Below are positions 1-52,131 of a stretch of DNA of 64,000 nucleotides, one piece after another. Origin of the DNA: Malacoraja senta (Eukaryota); assembly GCA_038087875.1 (NCBI GenBank), contig CM075980.1, forward strand, positions 44,082,001 to 44,146,000. The letters run 5' to 3'. The position numbers and the translations under genes are program-made. The notes under the pieces are model-generated. The model worked only from the letters and a program-made list of their open reading frames with translations, was not told the origin of the DNA and made no database searches. Every line of letters begins with the position of its first letter. Positions within the stretch are counted from its first letter, which is position 1.

Positions 1-1226
1 CCTGGTGTGGAACACCTCATCCTGGGTGCAGATGCGGCATAGACGGAGCTATTGGGAGTGGGGGGTGGAGTACTTACAGGAAACAGGGTGGGAAGAAGAG
101 TAGTCTAGATAGCCATGTGAGTCAGTGGGTTTATAGTAGATGTCGGTCAGTATTCTGTCACCTGCGATGGAGATAGTGAGGTCTAGTAACTGTAGGTAGA
201 TGTTGGAAATTGTCCAGGTGTATTTGAGTGCCAGATGGAAGTTAGTGGTGAATTGAATGAAGTCAGTCAGTTCTGTATGGATGCTGGAGGTAGCACCAAT
301 GCAGTCGTCGATGTAGCGGAGGTAGAGTTCAGGGATAGGGCCATGGTACGCCTCGAACAAGGATTGTTCGACATACCCTACAAAGAGGCAGGCATAGCTT
401 GGGCCCATGCGCGTGCCCATAGCTACGCCTTGGATTTGGAGGAAATGGGAGGAGTTAAACGAAAAGTTGTTGAGGATAAGGACCAGCTCCGCTAGGCGGA
501 GGAGAGTATCAGTAGATGGGGATTGGTTGGTTCTGCAGTCGAGGAAGAAACGGAGGGCTTTAAGACCCTCCTGGTGGGAGATGGAGGTGTAGAGTGACTG
601 GACATCCATGGTGAAGATGAGGGAATGGGGGCCTAGAAAATGGAAGTCAAGACAAAGAGCGTGTGAGGTATCTTGAACATACGTAGGGAGGGATTTAACC
701 AAGTGGGATGGATGGAGTCGAGGTATGTGGAAATATGTTCGGTGGGGCACGAATAGGCCGAAACAATGGGTCTGCCAGGACAGTCAGGTTTGTGGATTTT
801 GAGGAGAAGGTAAAATCGGGCCGTGCGGGGCTGCGGAACGATGAGGTTGGAGGCTTGGGAGGGCAGGAAGCCGGAAGTGATGAAGTCAGTGATAGTGGCC
901 TGGTGCTCGTCTGTGGGGTCATGGTCCAAGGTTAAGTAGGAGGAAGGTACACAAAAATGCTGGAGAAACTCAGCGGGTGCAGCAGCATCTATGGAGCGAA
1001 GGAAATAGGCAACGTTTCGGGCCGAAACCCTAAGTAGGAGGAGGTGTCTTAGATTTGGCAAGTGGCCTCAGCCTTGTAGAGATCAGCGCGCCAGACTACC
1101 ACGGCACCTCCCTTGTCGGCAGTTTTGATCACCCAGTCTGGGTTGTTGCAGAGTGAGTGGAAGGCTGTCCGTCGGGGGGGGGGGAGGTTAGAGTTCGAAA
1201 GGGGAGTGGAGAAGTTGAGGCGGCTG
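1..1226 (-). mobile_element. Penelope-like element, reverse transcriptase region (frameshifted)
   Basis: ORFs 49..750 and 633..1061 carry PLE RT motifs KIHKPDCPGRPIVS, FTMDVQSLYTSI, QIQGVAMGTRMGPSYACLF, YLRYIDD and YYKPTDSHGYLDYSSSHP; the element runs into an N gap. Confidence 0.9.
945..1030 (-). mobile_element. Short PLE terminal-repeat (pLTR) insertion inside the PLE RT
   Basis: Matches the pLTR at ~37817-37902; flanked by the 12-bp direct repeat TAAGTAGGAGGA (933-944, 1031-1042); truncated within hammerhead stem II. Confidence 0.8.
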
Positions 1227-1469
1227 ANNNNNNNNNNNNNNNNNNNNNNNNNNNNNNNNNNNNNNNNNNNNNNNNNNNNNNNNNNNNNNNNNNNNNNNNN
1301 NNNNNNNNNNNNNNNNNNNNNNNNNNNNNNNNNNNNNNNNNNNNNNNNNNNNNNNNNNNNNNNNNNNNNNNNNNNNNNNNNNNNNNNNNNNNNNNNNNNN
1401 NNNNNNNNNNNNNNNNNNNNNNNNNNNATGTAGGCAATAAATATAATTACTCAGTAAATGAAAAGGGAT

Positions 1470-1643
1470 TAAGGAAAGAGCGTTCACGTCGCGGCCCTGC
1501 TTCCACCAAGCTTTCCACCACCACGCACAAGAAGCACAAGAAGCGACAAGACAGACACCATTGTATACAGATGCCGAGAAGTGTGTTCAGCTCTGGCCGA
1601 ACAACTTCTAATCTTGTGTGTGGACTCGATAAGAAGAAGAAGT
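1470..1643 (+). mobile_element. Probable LINE 3' end with (AAG)n tail
   Basis: Ends ...tgtggactcgatAAGAAGAAGAAG, a microsatellite tail typical of non-LTR elements; clade not determined. Confidence 0.35.
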
Positions 1644-1805
1644 AAATGAAAAGGTTAATTCTAGTTAATTGCACCACAGTGATCCAAAAATTGTCGAGCA
1701 CTGTAAAGGCAGGCACAGTTATCACTGCAAGATACACCTGCACCTGTTTCAGTTGTGGGTCTGTCACAGGTGCTGTAGAATTGCCATACCGCTAAAGGAA
1801 AATAA

Positions 1806-2112
1806 TGGGCCTGTCCCACTTGGCCATTTTTTAGGCAACTGCTGGCGACTGTCATACTCGTAGCAGGTCGCTGAAAAACCGGCGACAACCTACGACAGCA
1901 CCTACATCAGGAGAAGTCAAGCTACGCTCATTGGCATCAAACCGACTGTCGCCGAAAATGTTTCAACATGTTGAAAATCTAGTGGCGACTAGAAAGACGC
2001 TACGACTTTTTGCACGACTGAGGAGACTACTCCCGGCGACCACCGGCGAACATGTGGCGACAAACTAGTCGTCTGTAGTTGCCTAAAAAATCGCCTAAGT
2101 GGGACAGGCCCA
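1806..2112. mobile_element. PIF/Harbinger (Tourist-like) MITE
   Basis: TIRs TGGGCCTGTCCCACTT / AAGTGGGACAGGCCCA; TAA TSD at 1803-1805 and 2113-2115; internal GGCGAC/GTCGCC repeats. Confidence 0.85.
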
Positions 2113-2671
2113 TAACGGTGTTCAGTCATAGGTTGGAACTGAGACAAGACGACCTGGTGAATGGTGACTTGATCGAGGTGTGGGGTGTCAGGCTTGAAGT
2201 GCTTTACATTTTTTAATACTTAACAAAATATCTTTTAATTGCACAGTTGGTTTCAATCATTTCTGAATGACTATCTTTTGAATATCCCCGACATTCAGAA
2301 GCAAGTCCTTAACTGTCCTGTCAGCTGGCAAGGGCTGGGTGTGGATTAGCCAGTTGGCAATGCCTTCTCAGTTGATTTGTGAGGCGAGGCTCTTCAGCTC
2401 TGCCCACCCAAAAACATGAAGGCATAATATAACACACCTCACCATTCGGCAGCAGGAACGGCCTTTGGCACCATGCTGACAAAGGATTATCAGTTGGTAT
2501 CCGCGTCAGTGACTCCTTCGTGCGATGCAAGCAAACATACATCCTCATAGTTCTCTCAAGGCATGCAGGCATTGGATCATGACCCCCAACAAAGATAGCA
2601 GAGGTGCTGTTGATCACAAAGTTCTCCTTTTACTGAACATTCACTAAGATGTCAACAATACTGCAACAGAA

Positions 2672-2838
2672 ATGTGGAGGAAAGAACTACAGATGCTGGT
2701 TTAAACCGAAGATAGACACAAAATACTGGAGTAACCCAGCGGGACAGGCAGCATCTCTGGAGAGAAGGAATGGGTGACGTTTTGGGTCGTGACCCTTCTT
2801 CAGACTGTGATTTACTCCAATATTTTGTGTCTATCTGC
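2672..2838 (-). mobile_element. PLE-derived mini-element with degenerate hammerhead
   Basis: pLTR consensus; the minus strand reads CTGAAGA-AGGGTCACGACCC-AAAACGTC; short inverted arm at the right end. Confidence 0.75.
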
Positions 2839-4370
2839 AACGTAAAAGATACACTGTACACTCCAAACATAGTACTTACGGTAAGTAGAAAATACAACAA
2901 CTTGAAAATCAGACGTGGAAATTAGGTTCAAATTCATTCCAAAGTGACTACAGAAATGTATAACCTTGTGACAGAGTATAATGAGTGAACTTTGCCACGG
3001 TGGGTGCACCATGCATGCATGTTTGAAACCTCAGGGCATGTACCACAAAGTGCTGTGGGCAGAAAATTATGCAAAGATTTGACTCGGCTGCAATGGAAAA
3101 ACACATTCTTCCTTCACCCTCCCGAAAACAAACACGAATGTTAACCATATAGGAGAGAAACCTTCCACTTACAATTTTGACTTGTTAATTAAATGCTCAA
3201 AAACAAATGTCTGCTAATTTTCTTCCTCTTTCAGGTGGATTGCTTGGGCCACAGTCACCATCAATGTGACTATGATCGGTTGCCAGGACCATGTTCATCC
3301 AGAATGGGATTTTTTTTCTGCCTGCTTTCTCTCTCTTTGCTTCAGGAAGGCCTTTCATCTAATTGTCTAACAGAATGAACAACATTACACATGATGCCAG
3401 TTAAGGTTGAATGACAGACAAGGCCACGGTTTGGCCTTGCAAAGCCTTGGCCTTGAAGCTGAATACTCTTCCGTTGCAACTACAAGGTTAGAGGAAGTCG
3501 AACCTTACTTTTGACTTTGAGTCTATTAAACCACAGTATATTCAAAGTAAAATTGTTGGCACGGTGTGAAATTGACTAAAGTCTATTTTTCTTTCTATTT
3601 CAGACCACCATGAGAATTCAGGATTGGACCTGATTACATTAAAGCTTTTGTTTTAAACCACATTCGATCTTTCCCCTAGATTCTTTCGCAATTCACAGAG
3701 AACTGATTACTCCAATGGGAACTGTTGTATTTCCATGTGGATAAAAAAAGACCCATCGTAATGCAGAAAGACTTTCAGGCATTAAAAATGAAACTACAGC
3801 ATGGATAAGTGACCACAACATTTCAAGATGCATGGTCATATTTTCAGTTGGAAAAGCATGTTGTCTCTCTCTGTAGGACCAACTCATTTAGTTGTGTGTG
3901 TAATGGAGTATTTTATGTTATCTTCAACAATAGGTCAAATCAGAAGGGAAGATGTGAATTGATTTTATCTAGGGAGTTATGATTTCCACTGCAATGCTTA
4001 AAACTCACAGATTTGCTAGATGTGGTACTCAAAGGTGTTTGTCAATGTTACTACACATCAGTCTGAAGCTAGTCCCACACAAGGAGAAGACTTGATGAGA
4101 TAAACCATTGACTTCCATTGGAGTAAAACAGATTTCTAAGTCTTCATTTACAAATCGTTGGAGGGAGAAGTCAAATAAAATGGGAATAAGATTTTTCTGC
4201 GTGGTGACGCTGAGCTGGCAGCAATATCTGTTCTGGGCCTGGCAGTTCACCCCAATCTTACCTGAACTGGACCCAACAGGTAGGTCTCTGACAACCTTTC
4301 ATTACTCAGGGATGTGATTGCCGAGGTACAGGTCAAGGTGGGCTGATAACCTACCAGGACAACTTGACAA

Positions 4371-7601: not shown

Positions 7602-8190
7602 CAGAGTTGTATGGGGCTCTGGTAAGACCACATCTGGAGTATTGTGTAGTTTTGGTCTCCTAATTTGAGGAAGGACATCCTTGTGATTGAGGCAGTGCAG
7701 CGTAGTTTCACGAGATTGATCCCTGGGATGGCGGGACTGTCATATGAGGAAAGATTGAAAAGACTAGGCTTGTATTCACTGGAGTTTAGGATGAGAGGAT
7801 ATCTTATAGAAATATAAAATTATAAAAGGATCGGACAGGCTAGATGCAGGAAAAATGTTCCCAATGTTGGGCAAGTCCAGAACCAGGGGTCACAGTCTTA
7901 GAATAAAGGGGACGTCATTTAGGACTGAGGTGAGAAAATACGTTTTCACCCAGAGAGTTGTGAATTTGTGAAATTCCCTGCCACAGAGGGCAGTGGAGGC
8001 CAAATCACTGGATGGATTTAAGAAAGAGTTAGATAGAGCTCTAGGGGCTGGTGAAATCAAGGGATATGGGGAGAAGGCAGGCACAGGTTATTGATTGGGG
8101 GATCAGCCATGATCACAATGAATGACGGTGTTGGCTCGAAGGGCTGAATGGCCTCCTCCTGCACCTATTTTCTATGTTTCTATGTTTCTA
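7602..8190 (+). mobile_element. CR1/HER1 LINE 3' fragment
   Basis: ORF2 C-terminal remnant (LYGALVRPHLEYC...SRTRGHSLRIKG) and (TTTCTATG)n tail. Confidence 0.85.
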
Positions 8191-9904: not shown

Positions 9905-10262
9905 AGAGACATAGAAAATAGGTGCAGGAGTGAGCCATTCAGCCCTTCAAGACAGCACAGCCATTCAATATGATCATGGCTGATCATCCAAAATCAGTAC
10001 ACTGTTCTTGCTTTTTCTCCATATCCCTTGATTCCGTGAGCCCGAAGAGCTAAATCTGACTCTCTTTTGAAAACATCCAGTGATTTGGCCTCCACTGCAT
10101 TCTGCGGCAGAGAATTCCGCAGATTCACAACTCTCTGGGTGAAGAAAGTTTTTTCTCATCTCAGTCCTAAATGGCCTACCCCTTGTTCTTAAACTGTGAC
10201 CCTGGTTCTGGACTCCCCCAACATCGGGAACATTTTTCCTGTATCTAGCCTGTCCATTCTTT
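9905..10262 (-). mobile_element. CR1 LINE 3' fragment
   Basis: ORF2 C-terminal remnant and 3' UTR. Confidence 0.8.
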
Positions 10263-10297
10263 TAATCTAATACATCATCACATAATGTAATACCTCA

Positions 10298-10925
10298 CAG
10301 GGCTGTCAACATTGGGCGAGAGTTGGGAGTGCAGCGCAGTTCAGTGCAGTTACAGTAATTCAGCGCAGTTACAGTAATTGAAAATCTAGCAGGCAAGCAG
10401 GATGCTTTCTCCAACCACCCCCATTTAAAGGCCACTATCTTCCACCGCTTCCACCCAGTGCTTGGTACCTACTTCCAGCAGCCACTGGTTGTCCTCCAAG
10501 ATGCACCGAACCGCAGCCTGGTCCATGCCGGTCACCAGGGCAAATTCAGCGCAGAGACTCTCACGGCAGCGGCGCAACGCTTCCGACGCCTCCGACGGCC
10601 CGGGACTCTTGCACTGAGGCTGCTCCATGGCCCGAGCTGCATCGAGCGACTCGCCAACCCGGCAAACATTCGCCAGCCCGGCAAACACTCGCCAGCCCCG
10701 GCTCCCCGTCTGCATCTGCCCCCGCCGCTGCTTCTGCTTCCATCCGTCCCTCCACCCCGGCTCTCCAACACCCGCGGCCCATGCAGTTGATATTAGTTTT
10801 GAAATTCTCGTTGATCACAGAATTTCTCACGACAGAGCGTGAGAAATTTGTGATCAGCGTGAGAGCGTGAGAATTGGGCCAAATGCGTGATTCTTACGCT
10901 CAATGCGTGAGAGTTGGCAGCTTTG
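10298..10925. mobile_element. Non-autonomous TIR DNA transposon (hAT-like) carrying a gene fragment
   Basis: TIRs CAGGGCTGTCAAC (10298-10310) and GTTGGCAGCTTTG (10913-10925); subterminal GCGTGA array at 10825-10912; no clean TSD. Confidence 0.65.
10473..10628 (-). pseudogene. TDP2: TDP2 (tyrosyl-DNA phosphodiesterase 2) exon-1 homolog, UBA-like domain; apparently a transposon-captured fragment
   Basis: gccATGG Kozak start; MEQPQ...RRCRESLCAEFALVTGMDQAAVRCILEDNQWLLE resembles TDP2 LCVEFASVASCDAAVAQCFLAENDWEME; phase-0 donor GAA|GTAGGT; exons 2-7 not found in the window. Confidence 0.75.
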
Positions 10926-14796: not shown

Positions 14797-15210
14797 TAAG
14801 TAAGTAAGTAAGTAAGTAAGTACATTTTATTTATATAGCACGTTTAAATCAACTCGCGTTGAAACCAAAGTGCTTTACATAAAAGAAATAATAAAAGAAA
14901 TAATAAAGTTTCCGTACATCCATAGAAAAATTAAAAATCATTAACACATATATTAACACATTATAGAATTCAACATGAACGTCCCCCCACAACAGAATCA
15001 AAAATTTCCACTGTGGGGAAAGGCATCAAAAAGTTAAGTCCTCTTCCTCTGTGAAACACCCGAGGTCAGGGCCTATTTGTGGCCTCCGCAGCCAGTCCGA
15101 TGTTTTCAGGCCCTCTTTGCCGGAAAGCTGGAACTCCGGCGTCGGGTGAACACTCCTCAGCGGCTTGGAAAATGTCTGGAGCGGCCGCTTCCTCCCCGGA
15201 GACCGCGGCC
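14797..15210 (-). mobile_element. GC-rich non-autonomous retroposon with L2-type tail, inserted in a pLTR
   Basis: (TTAC)n tail; GTAAAGCACTTTG...GTGCTATATAAATAAA end; shares a hairpin with the copies at 21.1, 34.5 and 51 kb. Confidence 0.6.
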
Positions 15211-15307
15211 TAGTATCTAGTATCTGCAGTTCCTTGCGTCTCCAAATTAATTTACGCTTTTTGCTGATTATATTTAGATTGTAACAGGGATTATATTTAG
15301 ATTGTAA

Positions 15308-16358
15308 TATTCCACCACTCACCCATTCCCCCAACGCAACCCGTTCCCCCAACACAATTTTCTACCCCTCAGCCATAACCCCTAACTGTGCAGGCACGGC
15401 TCATTTCTCCTCATCCCCCAGCACTGCCTCTCCCTCCTCTTCATGTGTGGGAGGGGAGGAGGGAAGTGGGGTGTGTGGGAGAGGGGTGTGTGTGGGCGGG
15501 GAAGGGGTGTGTGGGCAGGAGGGAAGGGTGTTGGGGTAGGAGAGAGGGGAGTGGGGGCGGGGGGAGGGGTGTGGGGTGGGGGGGAGAGGTGTGGGTGCGG
15601 GGAGAGGGGTGTGGGTGCAGGGGGGTTGTGGGGGGAGGAGGGGTGTGGAGGCGGGGGAGGGGTGTGGGGATGGGGTGGGGTGTGGGGGCAGGGGGGATGT
15701 GGGGGATGGGGGGTGTGGGCGGGGGGTTGTGGGGGGGAGTGGGAGGGGGAGGTGGGGAGGGAGGGGGAGAGCTCGGTGAAAAGACGGGGGAAGAGCCATG
15801 GGGGATAAGGCAGTATCACGGGGAGGGGGCAGGAGCCAGCGAGGGGGACCAGAGGGGAAGGGGCTGGAGCTGGTGCTGCGATGGGGACTCACAGCGGGCG
15901 CTGATCACTGGTCGTTCTCCTCCGCCAGGATCAGAGTCTCCGCTTTCCGTTTGGCAACATCGGCAACATCTCCGACTCCATGCTGGGCCGGGCCGCTTCT
16001 GGTCTGTCCGAAATTCTGGTTGGAGACCTCCGCCGGCCATCCTCAGCTCCAGTCAAGACACGATGGCGCAGGAAGAGGCGGACCGTCCCGCGGAGTGACA
16101 GGAGAAAAGACTCATCTGCGCGGCGCTGACTGGCAGGAGAGGAAATCGATCTGCGCACGCGAGGTTTTTAAGATTTTTAAATCTAGCTAACTTTTACAAT
16201 AAGCCACCGATCGGAACAAAGTTTTGTGCGCTCACAGTACAGGAGAACGGTGAGTGAGCTGGTGAAAAATCGTAGCGCTATCGCGTACTGATTTTGCGCA
16301 AATAGAAAAAACACGCAAACCGGAGGATAAGAAGATCAGAGTTATAGTTATGTATAGA
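15308..16358 (-). mobile_element. Non-autonomous Helitron, 3' end missing
   Basis: Minus strand starts A|TCTATACATAACTATAACTCTGATCTT (Helitron-type 5' TC terminus); G/C-rich low-complexity interior; no 3' hairpin-CTAG. Confidence 0.55.
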
Positions 16359-25039: not shown

Positions 25040-25250
25040 CCCAGGAAGAGGGCGGTGGAGGCCGGTTCTCTGGATACTTTCAAGAAAGAGCTAGATAGGG
25101 CTCTTAAAGATAGCAGACTCAGGGGATATGGGGAGAAGGCAGGAACGGGGTACTGATTGGGGATGATCAGCCATGATCACATTGAATGGCGGTGCTGGCT
25201 CGAAGGGCCGAATGGCCTACTCCTGCACCTATTGTCTATGGTCTATTGTT
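25040..25250 (+). mobile_element. CR1 3' fragment
   Basis: ORF2 end and 3' UTR with ATTGTCT-type tail. Confidence 0.8.
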
Positions 25251-25259
25251 TATAAGGTT

Positions 25260-26270
25260 AACAACTCTCCTTTTGATGCGAAGACTCTGCCACCCAACAC
25301 ATCAATCTCCAACATTTGCATCACCTTCAACGTGATCCCACTACCAGTCACATCATCCCATTCCCACCCCTTTCTCTATTCTGTCGAGAGCACATCCTCT
25401 GCAACTCCTTGGTTCACTCAGTCCTTACCTCCCAAACCACTCCTCCCCAGGCACTGTTCCTGCTACCACAGGAGATGCCACACATGTCCATACCCTCCTC
25501 CCTCACCATTATCCAGGGACTCCAGCAGCCATTCCACACCTCCTCTAACCTCTTCTACTGCATCCAAGTGCTCCCAATGTGGCCTGAATGTGGCGTAGGT
25601 TCACAAGGTTAATTCCCGGGATGGCGGGACTGTCATATGCTGAGAGAATGGAGCGGCTGGGCTTGTATACGCTGGAATTTAGGATGAGAGGGGATCTTAT
25701 TGAAACGTATAAGTTTATTAAGGGCTTGGACACGCTAGAGGCAGGAAACATGTTCCCAATGTTGAGGGAGTCCAGAACCAGGGGCCACAGTTTAAGAATA
25801 AGGGGTAAACCATTTAGAACGGAGATGAGGAAACACTTTTTCACACAGAAAGTTGTGAGTCTATGGAATTCTCTGCCTCAGAGGGCGGTGGAGGCCAGTT
25901 CTCTGGATACTTTCTTGAAAGAGTTAGATAGGGTTCTTGAAGATAGCGGAGTTAGTGGATATGGGGAGAAGGCAAGAACGGGGTACTGATTGGGGATGAT
26001 CAGCCATGATCACATTGAATGGCGGTGCTGGCACGAAGGGCCGAATGGCCTACTCCTGCACCTATTGTCTATTGTTCGTTACCACGGTGAGACCAAGCCA
26101 TGACTTAGCAACCGTTTAGTCAAGTACTTGGACTGCCATGGCATGTTGGCTCTCCCAGTTGCTAACCATTTTAACTCCCCTCCCTGATGAATACCGACCT
26201 TTCTATCCCAAGCCTCGTCCATCACCACAGCACGGCTACAAGAAACTGGAGGAACAGCACCTTAAATTTC
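25260..26270 (+). mobile_element. Degenerate PLE GIY-YIG region interrupted by CR1
   Basis: SSNLFYCI...GETK...KLEEQHL remnants similar to 43333-43800. Confidence 0.6.
25585..26074 (+). mobile_element. CR1 3' fragment
   Basis: ORF 25588..25989 RRFTRLIPGMAGLSYAER...WNSLP. Confidence 0.9.
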
Positions 26271-28674: not shown

Positions 28675-29400
28675 CAGTTGCTGCCTTACCCGGGTTCAGT
28701 CCCGGCTACCGGTGCTTGTCTGTACGCAGTTTGTACCTTCTCCCCGTGGCCTGAGTGGGTTTTCACCGGAGATCTTCGGTTCCTCCCACAATCCAAAGAC
28801 GTACAAGTTTGTAGGCTAATTGGCTTGGTATAAATGTAAATGTAGACTGGATAGACTCGGCTTGTACTCGCTAGAATTTAGAAGATTGAGGGGGGAATCT
28901 TATAGAAACTTACAAGATTCTTAAGGGGTTGGACAGGCTAGATGCAGGAAGATTGTTCCTGATGTTGGGGAAGTCCAGAACTAGGGGTCACAGTTTAAGG
29001 ATAAGGGGGAAGTCTTTTAGGTCCGAGATGAGAAAAACATTTTTCACACAGAGAGTGGTGAATCTGTGGAATTCTCTGCCACAGAAGGTAGTTGAGGCCA
29101 GTTCATTGGCTATATTTAAGAGGGAGTTAGATGTGGCCCTTGTGGCTAGAGGGATCAGGGGGTATGGAGAGAAGGCAGGTACAGGATACTGAGTTGGATA
29201 ATCAGCCATGATCATATTGAATGGCGGTGCAGGCTCGAAGGGCCGAGTGGCCTACTCCTGCACCTATTTTCTATGTTTCTATGTCTATGTTTCTAAATTA
29301 TCCCTAGTGTGTGTAGGATAGTGTAAGTGTGCAGGGATCGCTGGTCGGTGTGGACTCGGTGGGCCTGTTTCCATACTGTATCTCTAAACTAAACTAAATT
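28675..29400 (+). mobile_element. HE1 SINE interrupted by a CR1 3' fragment (~28843-29295)
   Basis: SINE resumes at aaattatccctagtgtg; CR1 ORF 28929..29192. Confidence 0.8.
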
Positions 29401-42848: not shown

Positions 42849-44050
42849 AGGTAGACACAAAATGCTGGAGAAACTCAGCGGGTGAGGCAGCATCTATGGA
42901 GAGAAGGAATTAGCGATGTTTCTGATGTCAGGGGAGGGGGCGGGACAAAGATAGAATGTAGGTGGAGACAGTAAGACTAGTGGGAGAACTGGGAAGGGGG
43001 AGGGGATGGTGAGAGAAAGCAAGGGCTACCTGAAGTTAGAGAAGTCAATGTTCATACTGCTGGGGTGTAAACTTCCCAAGCGAAATATGAGGTGCTGTTC
43101 CTCCAATTTGCGCTGGGTCTCACTCTGACAATGAAGGACGCCCAGGACAGAAAGATCAGATTGGGAATGGGAGGGGGAGTTGAAGTGCTGAGCCACGGGG
43201 AGATCAGTTTGGTTAAGCGGAGGTGTTCAGCAATATGATCGCCGAGCCTGCGCTTGGTTTCGCCGATGTACAGAAGTTGACACCTGGAACAGTGGATGCA
43301 GTAGATGAGGTTGGAGGAGGTGCAGGTGAACAATTCGCAGAGACCGTTCCCTCCGTAATTCCCTGGTCAACTCGTCCCTTCCCACCCAAACCGCCCCCTC
43401 CCCAGGTACTTTCCCCTACAACCGCAGGAGATGCAACACCTGTCTCTTTACCTCCCTCCTCGACTCCATCCAAGGACCCAAACAGTCTTTCCAGGTGAGG
43501 CAGAGGTTCACTTGAACCTCCTCCAACCTCATCTACTGCATCCGCTGTTCCAGGTGTCAACTTCTCTACATCGGCGAGACCAAGCGCAGGCTCGGCGATC
43601 GTTTCGCTGAACACCTCCGCTCAGTCCGTCTTAACCAAGCTGATCTCCCGGTGGCCCAACACTTCAACTCTCCCTCCAATTCCCAATCTGACCTTTCTGT
43701 CCTGGGCCTCCTCCATTGTCAGAGTGAGGCTCAGCGCAACTTGGAGGAACAGCACCTCATATTTCACTTAGGAAGTTTACAGCCCAGCGGTATGAACATT
43801 GACTTCTCCAACTTGACGTAGCCCTTTCTTTCTCACTCCATCCCCTCCCCCTTCCCAGTTTTCCCACTAGTCTTACTGCCTCCACCTACTTTGTCCCGCC
43901 ACCTCCCCCTGACATCAGTCTGAAGAAGGGTGTCGACCCGAAATGTCGCCAATTCCTTCTCTGCATAGATGCTGCTTCTCCCGCTGAGTTTCTCCAGCAT
44001 TTTGTTTCAACCTTCGTTTTTACCAGCATCTGCAGTTCTTTCTTAAACAT
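42849..44050. mobile_element. Penelope-like element 3' part (GIY-YIG + pLTR) in inverted arrangement
   Basis: FTCTSSNLIYCIHCSRCQLLYIGETKRRLGD on the minus strand (42849-43332) and on the plus strand (43333-44050); hammerhead at 43920-43947. Confidence 0.9.
43920..43947 (+). ncRNA. Minimal hammerhead ribozyme motif in PLE pLTR
   Basis: CUGAAGA-A-GGGU(GUCG)ACCC-GAAA-UG-UC, directly downstream of the GIY-YIG ORF. Confidence 0.65.
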
Positions 44051-45212: not shown

Positions 45213-47040
45213 TTAGACAATAAATAATAAACAATAGACAATAGGTGCAGTCGGCCATTTAGCCCTTCAAGCCAGCACGGCCATTCAATGTGATCATGGC
45301 TATTCATACACAATGAATACCCCGTTCCTGCCTTCTCCCCATATCCCCTGACTCCGCTATCTTTAAGGGCCCTATCTAGCTCTCTCTTGAAAGTATCCAG
45401 AGAACCTGCCTCCACCTAAGGCAGAGAATTCCACAGACTCACAACTCTCTGTGTGAAAAAGTGTTTCCTCATCACCGTTCTAAATAGCTTACCCCTTATT
45501 CTTAAACTGTGGCCCCTGGTTCTGGACTCCCCCAACATCGGGAACATGTTTCCTGCCTCTAGCGTGTCCAAACCCTTAATAATCTTATCTGTCTCATCCT
45601 TCAAAATTCCAGAGTATACAAGCCCAGCCACTCCATTCTCTCAGCATATGACAGACCCGCCATCCCGGGAATTAACCTTGTGAACCTATGCTGCACTCCC
45701 TCAATAGCAAGAATGTCCTTCCTCAAATTTGGAGACCAAAACTGCACTCAATACCCCAGGTGTAGTCTCACTAGGGCCCTGTACAACTGCAGAAGGCCCT
45801 CTTTGCTCCTATACTCAAATCCTCTTGTTATGAAGGCCAACATGCCATTCGCTTTCTTCACTGCCTGCTGTACCTGCATGCTTTCATTGACTGATGAACA
45901 AGGACCCCCAGATCTTGTTGTACTTCCCCTTTTCCCCAACTTGATACCATTTAGATAATAATCTTCCTTCCTGTTTCCGCTACCAAAGTGAATAACCTTA
46001 CATTTATCCACATTAAACTGCATCTGCCATGCATCTGCCCACTCACCCAACCTGTCCAAGTCACCATGCATTCTCATAGCATCCTCCTCACAGTTCACTG
46101 CCACCGAGCTTTGTGTCATCTGCAAATTTGCTAATGTTACTTGTAATCCCTTCATCTAAATCATTAATATATATTATAAATAGCTGCGGTCCCAGCACCG
46201 AGCCTTGCGGTACCCCACTAGTCATTGCCTGCCATTCTGAAAGGGACTCGTTAATCCCTACACTTTGTTTCCTGTCTGCCAACCAATTTTCTATCCATGT
46301 CAGCACTCTACCCCCAATACCATGTGCTCTAATTTTGCCTACTAATCTCCTATGTGGGACCTTATCAAATGCTTTTTGAAAGTCCAGATACACTACATCC
46401 ACTGGCTCTCACTTGTCCAATTTCCTAGTTACATCCTCAAAAAATTCCAGATGATTAGTCAAGCATGATTTCCCCTTCGTAAATCCATGCTGACTCGGAC
46501 CGATCCTGTCACTGCTATCCAAATGTGCCGCTATTTCATCTTTTATAATTGACTCCAGCATCTTCCTCACCACCGATGTCAGGCTAACTGGTCTATAATT
46601 CCCTGTTTTCTCTCTCCCGCCTTTCTTAAAAAGTGGGATAACATTAGCTACCCTCCAATCCACAGGAACTGATCCTGAATCTATAGAACATTGGAAAATG
46701 ATCACCAATGCGTCCACGATTTCTAGAGCCACTTCCTTAAGTACCCTGGGATGCAGACCATCAGGCCCTGGGGATTTATCAGCCTTCAGTCCCATCAGTC
46801 TACCCAACACCATTACCTGCCTAATGTGGATTTCCTTCAGTTCCTCCGTCACCCCAGATCCTCTGGCCACTACAATATCAGGAAGATTGTTTGTGTCCTG
46901 CTTCGTAAAGACAAATCCAAAGTATCTGTTCAACACATCTGCCATATCCTTGCTCCCCATAATAAATTCACCCGTTTCAGTCTTCAAGGGTCCAACTTTG
47001 ATCTTAACCAATTTGTTCCTCTTCACATACCTAAAGAAAT
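45213..47040 (-). mobile_element. CR1 LINE, RT domain and 3' end
   Basis: [51 protein letters not shown]. Confidence 0.95.
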
Positions 47041-47107: not shown

Positions 47108-48210
47108 TTTGTTTAGTTTAGAGATACAGCGCAGAAACTGGCTCTTCGGTCCACCGGTCATCCCCGCACTCTAATACTATCCTACACACTAGGGACAATT
47201 TATATTTATATCAAGCCAACTACAAACCTGTACATCTCTGGAGTGTGGGAGGAAACCGAAAATCAATAGACAATAGATAATAGACAATAGGTGCAGGAGT
47301 AGGCCAATCGGCCTTTCGAGCCAGCACCGCCTTTCGAGCCAGCACCGCCATTCAATGTGATCATGGCTGATCATGCACAATCAGTACCTCGTTCCTGCCT
47401 TCTCCCCATATCCCCTGACTTCGCTATCTTTAATGCCCTATCTAGCTCTTTCTTGAAAGTATCCAGAGATCCGGCCTCCACCGCCCTCTGAGGCAGAGAA
47501 TTCCACAGACTCACAACTCTCTGTGTGAAAAAGTGTGTTCTCGTCTCCGTTCTAAATGGCTTACCCCTTATACTTAAACTGTAGCCCCTGGTTCTGGACT
47601 TCCCCAACATCGGGAACATGTTTCCTGCCTCTAGCGTGTCCAAACCCTTAATAATCTTATATGTTTCAATAAGATCGCCTCTCATCCTTTTAAATTCCAA
47701 AGTATACAAGCCCAGCCGCTCCATCCTCTCAGCATATGACAGTCCCGCCATCCCGGGAATTAACCTTGTAAACCTACGCTGCACTCCCTCAATATCAAGA
47801 ATGTCCTTCCTCAAATTAGGGTACCAAAACTCCAGGTGTGGTCTCACAAGGGCCCTGTACAACTGCAGAAGGACTTCTTTGCTCCTATACTCAACTCCTC
47901 TTGTTATGAAGGCCAACATGCCATTCGCTTTCTTCACTGCCTGCTGTACCTGCATGCTTACTTTCATTGACTGATGAACAAGGACCCCCAGATCCCATTG
48001 TACTTCCCCTTTTTGGAACTTTCCCTTCCCCTTTTCCTAACTTGACTCCATTTAGATAATAATCTGCCTTTCTGTTTTTGCTCGGAGAAAAACCCACACA
48101 GGTCACAGAGAGAAGGTACAAACTCCGTCAGAGAGCACCCATATTCGGGATTGAACTCGGGTCTCTGGCGCTGTAAGGCAACAACTCTACCACTGCGCCA
48201 CTGTGCCGAC
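47108..48210 (-). mobile_element. HE1 SINE interrupted by a CR1 3' fragment (~47263-48080)
   Basis: ORF 47371..47967 is the CR1 C-terminus; SINE halves on both sides. Confidence 0.85.
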
Positions 48211-50624: not shown

Positions 50625-51700
50625 GGGCAGCACGGTGGCGCAGCAGTAGAGTTGCTGCCTTACAGCGCTTGCAGCGCCGGAGACCTGGGTTCGATCACCA
50701 CTTCGGGTGCTGTCTATGCGGAGTTTTACGTTCTCGAGTGTGGCTGCCTCGCCTGCAGTGGTCTGTCCTCTCATCCTTTTTGTTATTTTTAGTCTGTTTT
50801 AAAGTTTGTTTTTGGAGGTCTTTAGTCTTTTTTATGTGGGGGGAAAGGGGGGGAAGGGGAATCTGTTTTTCGACCGGATAGATGGTCGAGGATGCATCTA
50901 TCCTCCGAGCCGCATCGTCGCCCCCTCCACGCAGCCTACTATCTGGATTGGTGCGGCCTTTCCGGCCAGAGCTTCAGCTTCAGCAGCGGCGCAGCACTGG
51001 ATTTCATCGCGGAGCAAGCGATGCCTTACCGGGAATCGCCGTGTTGGAGCTCCGGAGTGCTGGGACTGCCGACTTCAACACCGTGGAGCTGTGGTCTGTG
51101 GAGCTTCCAGCCGCGGCGGCGCTGACTCTGGCATTGCAGAGCCTAGGATCTCTCGCTGAGGTCGCCAGGATTGAATCTCCAGCCAGCTCGGCCTGTGGAC
51201 TTCGGGATCCGCGGTCTCCGGTAGGAAGCGGCCGATTCGGAGGCTCCGGGCAGCTGAGAGTGTTCTTCCGTTCGAGGGCCTGAAACACCGGGCCGCTGTA
51301 GCAGCGACTGCGGAGGCCTCAATAGGCCCCGACCATGGGTGAACAGAGGAAGATGACTGAACTTTGGTGCCTTCCCTCACAGTGGGAAACGTTGATTCCG
51401 CTGTGGGGGGATGTTTTTATGTTTTATGTTAAATTCTATAGTGTTGTGTTTATCTCATCTGTGTGCTGCATGGTAACTCAAATTTCACTGCACCAATTGG
51501 TGACAATAAATGTCCTTTGTCCCCATGACCGCGTGGGTTTTCTTCGATATCTTTCCATTTCCTCCCACACTCCAAAGACGTACAAACCAAGGAAACCGAA
51601 CATCTTGGAGGAAACCTACGCAGGTCACGGAGAGAACCTAAAAACTCTGTACAGACAAGCACCCGTTGTCAGGATTGAACTCGGGTCTCTGGCGTAAGGC
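50625..51700. mobile_element. HE1 SINE cluster hosting a GC-rich retroposon
   Basis: HE1 head at 50625-50734, continuation at ~51520-51575, inverted HE1 piece to ~51700. Confidence 0.7.
50735..51519 (+). mobile_element. GC-rich non-autonomous retroposon, near full length, Rex1-type tail
   Basis: CpG-rich body; conserved hairpin at ~51371-51411; tail aaatttcactgcac...gtgacaataaa. Confidence 0.7.
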
Positions 51701-51865
51701 AGTATGTACAGGAGGGAGCTGCTGGTTTACACCGAAGATTGATATAAAATGCTGGAGTAACTCAACGGGACAGGCAGCATCTCTGGATAGAAGGAATGCT
51801 ATGCCACTGTGCCTCATGAATATGATTGTACTTGAAGGTATGGTGATCATTAACTCTAAAAACAA

Positions 51866-52131
51866 GACCCCACCCCCCCAACACCCCCGCCTCCGCCTTC
51901 CCCACCCCTGCCCCCCTGGCACCCCCCCCCCGCACCATGCCCCCCCCCCCCGCTCCTGCCCCCCCCCCAACGTGGGGACAATTTATTGCCTCCATAAATT
52001 CCATAATTTTCCTCGTGGGGGGTGATGGGCGTGATTGGCTCTGGGGGACGCCTGTCTCTGGGGTGAGTGCCGATGCCACACCCCCTCCCCTCGCATTGGG
52101 GATGGGGCCCATCGGGTCCCACTCGGTCTAG
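51866..52131 (+). mobile_element. Helitron 3' terminal fragment
   Basis: Subterminal hairpin GGGGCCC-ATC-GGGTCCC, then ...GGTCTAG|T. Confidence 0.65.

Follow-up and report, generated by a model that had tools for sequence, protein, structure and literature searches.

The Pack-TYPE transposons of plants, Pack-MULE and Pack-CACTA among them, are non-autonomous DNA transposons known for transduplication (PMC8903248, PMC6379663), and in animals Turmoil-1 of Caenorhabditis elegans carries host coding sequence transduplicated into a DNA transposon with terminal inverted repeats (TIRs) (PMC2572040). A third system is the HelibatN3 Helitron of Myotis, which carries part of NUBPL (Pritham & Feschotte 2007, cited in PMC4224331). 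Here we analysed positions 10298-10925 of a 64-kb window (the whole stretch of DNA presented here) on contig C4 of the 1.94-Gb Malacoraja senta assembly; coordinates given without a contig are positions within this window. We read the segment, with a probability of about 0.88, as a copy of a non-autonomous cut-and-paste TIR family which captured the 5′ end of the host gene TDP2, was amplified, and now carries it as a decaying passenger. TDP2 encodes an enzyme that takes off 5′-phosphotyrosyl DNA adducts.

With the plant Pack-TYPE transposons the TDP2-carrying element shares the organization of a non-autonomous TIR element with captured host gene DNA inside, introns included, present in many copies that are probably mobilized in trans and mostly contain decaying pseudo-exons. 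It differs from them in residing in a vertebrate and in having TIRs of 13 bp and target site duplications (TSDs) of 6-8 bp, which are neither Mutator- nor CACTA-like; moreover, a probably single TDP2 capture has led to ~1,000 copies, far above typical Pack-MULE families. Turmoil-1 is likewise an animal TIR DNA transposon that has transduplicated host coding sequence, but it holds the captured pieces inside its long inverted terminal repeats and has few copies, whereas the TDP2 piece lies in the interior of the element, brings promoter and intron with it, and is present in high copy number. The closest parallel is HelibatN3, which, as far as the citing account describes it, likewise took from a single gene the promoter, the 5′ untranslated region (5′UTR), the first exon and a portion of intron 1, and was amplified to around a thousand copies in a vertebrate. 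Helitrons are rolling-circle elements with no TIRs and no TSDs. The TDP2 element has both and is on this basis assigned to the cut-and-paste elements; it also differs from HelibatN3 in its cargo and in the vertebrate lineage concerned.

The organization of the window copy is given below, where L numbers denote retrieved loci and locus A on contig C19 is one of two TDP2 paralogues described further on.

10298-10331, plus strand: 34-bp left end of the family, with a 34-nt alignment to the left ends of L012, L013, L006, L007 and L037, after which the sequences diverge
10298-10310, plus strand: left 13-bp TIR, CAGGGCTGTCAAC, with 1 mismatch to the family consensus
10332-10364, no strand: 33-bp filler at an internal-deletion junction, partly a tandem duplicate of the adjoining TTCAGYGCAGTTACAGTAA (repeat families D3 and D4)
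10365-10472, minus strand: captured start of TDP2 intron 1, ~106 bp, with homology from 10367; the family majority is 91.7% identical to C19 locus A
10473-10628, minus strand: captured TDP2 exon 1, 52 codons, N-terminal UBA-like domain; ATG at 10628-10626, donor GTAGGT at 10472-10467
10629-10779, minus strand: captured TDP2 5′UTR and proximal promoter, ~150 bp, 81% identical to C19 locus A, with homology stopping at ~10779
10651-10688, minus strand: 19-bp tandem duplication in the 5′UTR part (repeat family D5), not in the real TDP2
10780-10925, plus strand: transposon-specific right terminal region with no TDP2-locus homology, partly common to an older backbone family (L037, L031)
10837-10910, plus strand: subterminal GCGTGA(GA) array, enriched in GCGTGA
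10913-10925, plus strand: right 13-bp TIR, GTTGGCAGCTTTG, with 2 mismatches to the consensus GTTGGCAGCCCTG

The copy thus retains 34 bp at the left and 561 bp at the right, separated by 33 bp of filler. A first-pass annotation, made from the letters alone, had described inverted termini around an uninterrupted 52-codon minus-strand exon with an ATG and a GTAGGT donor, had noted a subterminal GCGTGA array at the right terminus, and had named the missing clean TSD as its weakness. Each of these observations holds. Translation of 10628-10473 on the minus strand gives MEQPQCKSPGPSEASEALRRCRESLCAEFALVTGMDQAAVRCILEDNQWLLE, open over 52 codons from the ATG and directly followed by GTAGGT. The motif GCGTGA occurs nine times across the 64-kb window, and five of the nine lie inside 10837-10910, against an expectation of ~0.025 per 146 bp. 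The flanks ATACCTCA and GAGTTACT differ, so no TSD surrounds the copy, and its own termini are complementary at just 10 of 13 positions. They nevertheless belong to one TIR family with a perfect 13-bp consensus.

The peptide was likewise correctly assigned to the N-terminal UBA-like domain of TDP2. Searched against all PDB sequences, it matched TDP2 only, namely the human UBA domain (6q00_B, E=7.9e-4) and, as a second match, C. elegans TDP2 (E=0.91), which alone is not significant. The Pfam model UBA_4 matched with E=0.0019, just under threshold, and the language-model neighbours of the peptide in a protein atlas are UBA_4-type clusters. Against the real exon 1 of the genome (L033:4417-4238) the captured exon gives E=1.6e-27 in tblastn, and at the DNA level the family majority is 94.9% identical to the real TDP2 exon 1, a 24-bp indel aside. 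An exhaustive protein search with the 52-aa exon did not recover full-length TDP2; it returned only P0001, which is a read-through open reading frame (ORF) of another transposon copy, and one spurious bacterial match.

Copies were sought with window 10298-10925 against its own assembly, and the best 40 of 3,021 first-look candidates were scored; all 40 are 90-93% identical across window 10365-10921. Allowing up to 2 mismatches, a 25-mer from the terminus on the exon side has 2,521 genomic occurrences (reversed control, 0); for a 32-mer that spans the junction of exon and donor, with up to 3 mismatches allowed, there are 1,028 (control, 0). The family, including the long-form joint 10240>10365, is also contained in four sequencing runs which behave as low-coverage DNA, with organisms coded A, B and C; none of the runs listed is recorded as RNA.

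Since the exhaustive protein search had given only the read-through ORF of a transposon copy, a 45-aa probe for human TDP2 (exons 3-4) served as the lead to the parent gene, and the loci found were then confirmed independently against PDB. The probe matched C19:4698195-4698281 (E=3.6e-7), with the next exon at 4695037-4695090, and a second, tandem locus at C19:4638803-4638889 and 4630952-4631005. For the exon at 4698195-4698281, exon 3 (DESVISLLTWNIDGLDETNLQERARGVCSCLAL, TWNIDGL...), all 13 of 13 PDB matches are TDP2 catalytic domains, the best with E=3.6e-12. Exon 1 lies at 4712337-4712516, ~14 kb upstream of exon 3 on the same strand, and encodes MEQPQCKSLGPSEAAGPQVEGEEEALRRCRESLCAEFALVTGMDQAAARCILEDNQWLLD; this is the exon that matches the window peptide at E=1.6e-27, and it also matches the TDP2 UBA domain in PDB. 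Between the two, near 4701940, exon 2 follows a polypyrimidine-AG acceptor and starts with RALNSYFE, a continuation of the UBA-like domain as in human TDP2. The exon 1 of the paralogue lies at C19:4646439-4646618. Neither C19 TDP2 locus has the transposon TIRs or subterminal repeats.

The first-pass annotation had proposed that a TIR transposon captured, and perhaps amplified, TDP2 exon 1, to be checked by counting copies in the genome and by locating the true multi-exon gene. Both checks came out in its favour: the exon is not single-copy, with 1,028 occurrences of the exon/donor junction, and the parent locus, with exons 1-3, is on C19. It is because the real multi-exon gene lies there that the annotation had found no catalytic exons in the 10 kb downstream of exon 1.

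The two TDP2 paralogues, at C19:4630952-4646618 (locus B) and 4695037-4712516 (locus A), are arranged in tandem on the minus strand, ~66 kb apart (L032, L033, L035, L036). In each, exon 1 encodes a 60-aa UBA-like N-terminus, and non-coding identity between the two is ~85-92%. A copy of the backbone family lies at C19:4736134-4737124, ~24 kb upstream of exon 1 of locus A; it may be there by chance, given thousands of copies (roughly 10%), or may be a trace of the capture event. Two catalytic motifs were also used as degenerate DNA patterns. The single-exon pattern WNIDG...LQEV had no genomic match because an intron separates both motifs. The pattern for P-S-D-H-W-G-L had 15 matches, 14 of which are a repeat encoding PCDHWGL; the fifteenth (C5745) was rejected as TDP2, being non-coding on translation and hence a chance match. 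The repeated motif CCCTGTGACCACTGGGGTTT (P-C-D-H-W-G-L) occurs at 14 sites on many contigs (e.g. G000:C1:174392107, C2:49484286, C7:46368770) and is probably part of a multi-copy endonuclease-bearing element.

The extent of the capture follows from alignment of the element to the parent locus. Element positions 156-739 and 759-1200 are collinear with TDP2 at 80.6-84.7% identity, with similar values for the paralogue. In all, ~1.05 kb was captured: exon 1 together with ~150 bp of the 5′ flank and ~0.8 kb of the first intron. In the window copy, homology to TDP2 starts at 10779, 151 bp upstream of the ATG, and runs via the exon into intron 1. Long copies also contain a short interspersed nuclear element (SINE) that is nested in TDP2 intron 1, and its junction, CTGTAACTGC/AGGAAAAATG, is identical in both. 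The terminal ~155 bp of the element have no C19 counterpart, as 51% identity over 51 aligned columns equals random.

A 24-bp deletion in the exon and the 19-bp tandem duplication in the 5′UTR are common to all transposon copies and absent from both C19 paralogues, which suggests that there was probably a single capture followed by amplification. As for the donor, over 413 bp the family majority has an identity of 0.893 to locus A and 0.866 to locus B, with 0.918 between A and B. The numbers of odd-one-out sites (transposable element, 29; B, 20; A, 10) accompany these values, and locus A or an ancestor of A and B is mildly favoured.

The aligned copies terminate in GTTGGCAGCCCTG. Since this is exactly CAGGGCTGCCAAC in reverse complement, the consensus termini of the family form a perfect 13-bp TIR, of which the two imperfect ends of the window copy are mutated versions. 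The inverted-repeat match of the family ends stops after 13 bp. TSDs were found at L006 (TTAACA), L013 (CAAGTG), L012 (TGTCACAC/TGTTACAC) and at L037 of the related backbone family (TACAATA), and none at the window copy or L007. The search for TSDs, for which the first-pass annotation had called, was thus positive for these four copies and negative for the copy it had described.

Other copies run past 10364/10365 into further sequence until they reach a second TIR. The complete copy L012:502-3871 measures 3,370 bp from TIR to TIR, and L013 is the same element with a nested long interspersed nuclear element (LINE). L012:502-3871 contains no long ORF, and the ORFs of the backbone contain no Pfam domain; the family is therefore non-autonomous. 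The ORFs in L031 and in the L013 insert belong to nested LINEs and are not transposase, and no autonomous copy encoding a transposase with the family ends was found among the loci retrieved.

An older, more divergent backbone family matches the element over 88 bp on the exon side and over 354 bp at the opposite end, has a different interior, and does not contain the TDP2 piece. A search for it gave 4,050 first-look candidates, and most of the long matches are 73-81% identical to the query. It is likely the scaffold that acquired the TDP2 piece. Since it lacks the exon, which encodes a conserved part of TDP2, the N-terminal UBA-like domain, the transfer is read as running from host to transposon. 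One member, L037:101-2646 (G000:C6:58870644-58873189), is ~2.5 kb long with the same 13-bp TIRs and the 7-bp TSD given above; L031:101-158 is also part of this family. The interior of the backbone family is GC-rich and has internal tandem repeats of ~70 bp, and this family is also non-autonomous; its interior might be another captured sequence.

Regarding classification, the element has the features of a Pack-type transposon: TIRs common to a wider family, TSDs, captured host-gene DNA with a parent elsewhere in the genome, and no transposase gene. Pack-MULEs and other Mutator-like elements have TIRs of ~100 bp or more and TSDs of 9-11 bp. With a 13-bp TIR and TSDs of 6-8 bp the family is not Mutator-like, and the term Pack-MULE-like used in the first-pass annotation has to be given up. 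The termini (CAGGG, subterminal repeats) look hAT-like. The hAT terminus motif is YARNG, and hAT TSDs normally have a fixed length of 8 bp; the CAGGG terminus and 13-bp TIR agree with this motif and with the short TIRs of hAT elements. Non-autonomous hAT elements (Ds, and MER/Charlie-type miniature inverted-repeat transposable elements) are alike in a terminus of this motif, short TIRs, subterminal repeats and deletion derivatives with filler, but differ in their normally fixed 8-bp TSD from the TDP2 family with 6, 6, 7 and 8 bp, for which no hAT transposase partner was found among the retrieved loci. Because the TSD lengths are mixed, we left the superfamily unassigned.

These findings are consistent with the following course of events. 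A progenitor TIR element would have taken up ~1.05 kb of host TDP2 at the DNA level, probably once, acquiring the 5′ flank and 5′UTR, the whole first coding exon and ~0.8 kb of intron 1 with the SINE already nested in it. This piece would have been placed between the exon-side terminal region of ~155 bp and the remainder of the element. The resulting element of ~3.4 kb, having no transposase gene, would have been moved in trans by a transposase recognizing the 13-bp TIRs and the subterminal GCGTGAGA repeats, reaching roughly 1,000 exon-bearing copies.

The window copy itself is a special case. None of the other copies among the best 40 scored matches carries its junction, and all lose homology at 10364/10365. 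The 628-bp form is therefore best read as a unique internal-deletion derivative and not as the amplified unit. On this point the first-pass annotation, which had taken the 628 bp as a mobile module, is corrected: the amplified unit is ~3.4 kb with ~1.05 kb of TDP2, and the 628-bp form has a junction unique among the copies scored and no TSD. The missing TSD and the minimal left end are the reasons for assuming that the deletion arose in place; interrupted gap repair would have formed the window copy where it now lies, and it probably never moved in this form. Outside the left TIR, at a distance of 31 bp, there is a SINE copy (9905-10266) oriented like the SINE nested in the long copies and 88% identical to it, compared with ~80-83% for most SINE copies. 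The captured SINE is truncated, and since the copy next to the TIR continues for another 25 bp past that point, it is treated as a separate generic copy whose adjacency to the left TIR is taken as coincidence.

The fate of the cargo was examined in 11 other copies, a small and biased sample consisting of best matches to the window copy, with the family majority as reference. Divergence is given per segment.

Intron part: mean divergence 3.8%; CpG sites 12.5%; non-CpG sites 3.6%
Exon: mean divergence 4.3%; CpG sites 12.3%; non-CpG sites 2.6%
5′UTR/promoter: mean divergence 4.6%; CpG sites 10.2%; non-CpG sites 3.1%
Transposon end: mean divergence 4.5%; CpG sites 14.0%; non-CpG sites 3.0%

CpG sites decay ~4 times faster than other sites, which suggests germline methylation of the copies, and as the exon and the non-coding parts diverge equally, the pattern points to the captured exon and promoter being neutral passengers, probably methylated. 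A stop or frameshift is present in 2 of the 11 exon copies; the remaining nine ORFs are intact with the donor kept, which is about what neutral decay of 52 codons at ~4% divergence predicts. With the family majority as reference, the ratio of non-synonymous to synonymous differences per site (pN/pS) is 0.37 when all sites are counted and 0.56 for non-CpG sites, the latter not significant (about p=0.07). The window copy keeps nearly all CpGs, with 30 in the captured 413 bp, as in the real gene; its CpG loss is lower than that of the other copies, not significantly so (Fisher p=0.15).

These same data bear on the alternative that survives best, namely a function for the captured 5′ module in one or more of the copies. 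The module could act as promoter and first exon at dispersed sites, yielding chimeric transcripts or a UBA-only peptide, or could supply antisense or small RNA directed at TDP2; the first-pass annotation had offered similar roles as speculation. This alternative draws on the nine intact ORFs with preserved donors, on a pN/pS below 1, and on the precedent of bat Helitrons, among which those with promoters and first exons are the most abundant and contribute to transcripts (PMC4224331). We consider it unlikely, as the exon has diverged as much as the non-coding parts, the share of intact ORFs needs no selection to explain it, the CpG sites decay as in methylated DNA, and the pN/pS deficit loses significance without the CpG sites. 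A more concrete version, in which some of the ~1,000 TDP2 promoter/first-exon modules would drive chimeric transcripts, a UBA-only peptide, or antisense or small RNAs that modulate TDP2, is compatible with the preserved donors, the intact ORFs and the low pN/pS, and appears improbable on the sequence evidence. If true, such active modules would tie transposon cargo to host DNA-break repair.

Very improbable is a spread by means other than TIR transposition, be it LINE-mediated retrotransposition of a SINE/LINE-tailed transcript or segmental duplication. It could appeal to the LINE-tail repeat that follows the captured intron piece in long copies, and to the repeat unit having first seemed to stop at 9905. 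The copies, however, run ~2.5 kb past the SINE to a second TIR, and their ends are precise, at inverted 13-bp termini with short TSDs. A retrocopy or SINE-type retroposon does not describe these copies either, as they keep intron and 5′ flank and have no poly(A), and as the SINE was already in TDP2 intron 1 with an identical junction. A SINE-like retroposon consisting of a head and a LINE tail had been tried as a candidate and was ruled out by the second TIR beyond the SINE and by the SINE belonging to TDP2 intron 1.

The reverse transfer, in which the exon was born in the transposon and the C19 TDP2 gene received its first exon and promoter from an old insertion, has little to commend it beyond the homology between element and C19 being in itself symmetric. 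The UBA-like domain encoded by the exon has its match in human TDP2 at the corresponding N-terminal position and a weaker one in C. elegans TDP2, and C19 exon 1 splices to RALNSYFE, as does exon 1 of human TDP2. Both C19 paralogues lack TIRs and subterminal repeats, and the exon is missing from the older backbone family with the same ends, so that this direction is highly implausible. That the window holds the genuine TDP2 exon 1 at its native locus, with TIR-like flanks from unrelated insertions and exons 2-7 beyond the window start, is hardly credible: the ORF, ATG context and donor are all intact, the 30 CpGs per captured 413 bp are nearly all kept and no TSD is present, but the same exon and flanks occur ~1,000 times in the genome, TDP2 exons 1, 2 and 3 lie in order on C19 and not on C4, the copy has the family-specific 24-bp deletion and 19-bp duplication that neither real paralogue has, and homology to the real locus ends exactly where the transposon-specific ends start.

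Several points weigh against the reading as an amplified, decaying capture by a TIR family. No TSD flanks the window copy, 2 substitutions are present in its right TIR, and a single-insertion origin of both its ends cannot be proven. The position and orientation of the SINE outside the left TIR remain an odd coincidence. Among the copies, TSDs are of uneven length (6, 6, 7 and 8 bp at four of them) and are missing from two, and for ~1.8 kb of the long element (positions ~1200-3016) no source was identified. Finally, the silence of the copies is deduced from their sequence, and a pN/pS below 1 in the small biased sample leaves room for weak constraint on the exon.

Some further observations concern individual copies and the rest of the window. 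At L008:116-2060 (G000:C951) two truncated TDP2-carrying copies, 94% and 85% identical to L012, meet near L008:1160 as a head-to-head inverted pair. A public metagenome contig, L034 (ENA ERZ25070917, 4,646 bp), bears a copy of the TDP2-carrying transposon with the TIR CAGAGCTGCCAAC at 3835, and its gene at 4019-4351 is the read-through ORF of this copy, annotated as the 110-aa protein P0001. The contig looks like host DNA within a metagenome, and P0001 like an annotation artefact from the captured exon. Within the window, an abundant LINE-tail/SINE-like repeat has at least eight copies, including those at 9905-10266, 7845-8182, 25047-25240, 25741-26072, 28943-29281, 45229-45556 and 47329-47628, and its contig depth in the sequencing runs compared is enormous. 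GC-rich peaks (GC 0.53-0.61 against a background of ~0.40-0.45) at 15001-16000, 43001-44000 and 51001-52000 could be CpG islands or GC-rich repeats.

A limited literature search, which is not proof of novelty, returned no report that TDP2 had been captured and none of a Pack-type TIR family in fishes, cartilaginous or other. Capture of host genes by cut-and-paste elements followed by mass amplification is well documented in plants, and animal cases are few in the literature searched, namely Turmoil-1 and the Helitrons of bats and frogs. The TDP2 element is a vertebrate TIR example for which the parent gene, the capture boundaries, a cargo-free backbone and ~1,000 copies have been identified, and is in this respect a counterpart of the bat Helitron with NUBPL. 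Around a thousand false "TDP2 first exons" can mislead gene annotation, P0001 being one instance. By scattering CpG-island promoter and splice-donor modules genome-wide, the copies also constitute a natural experiment.

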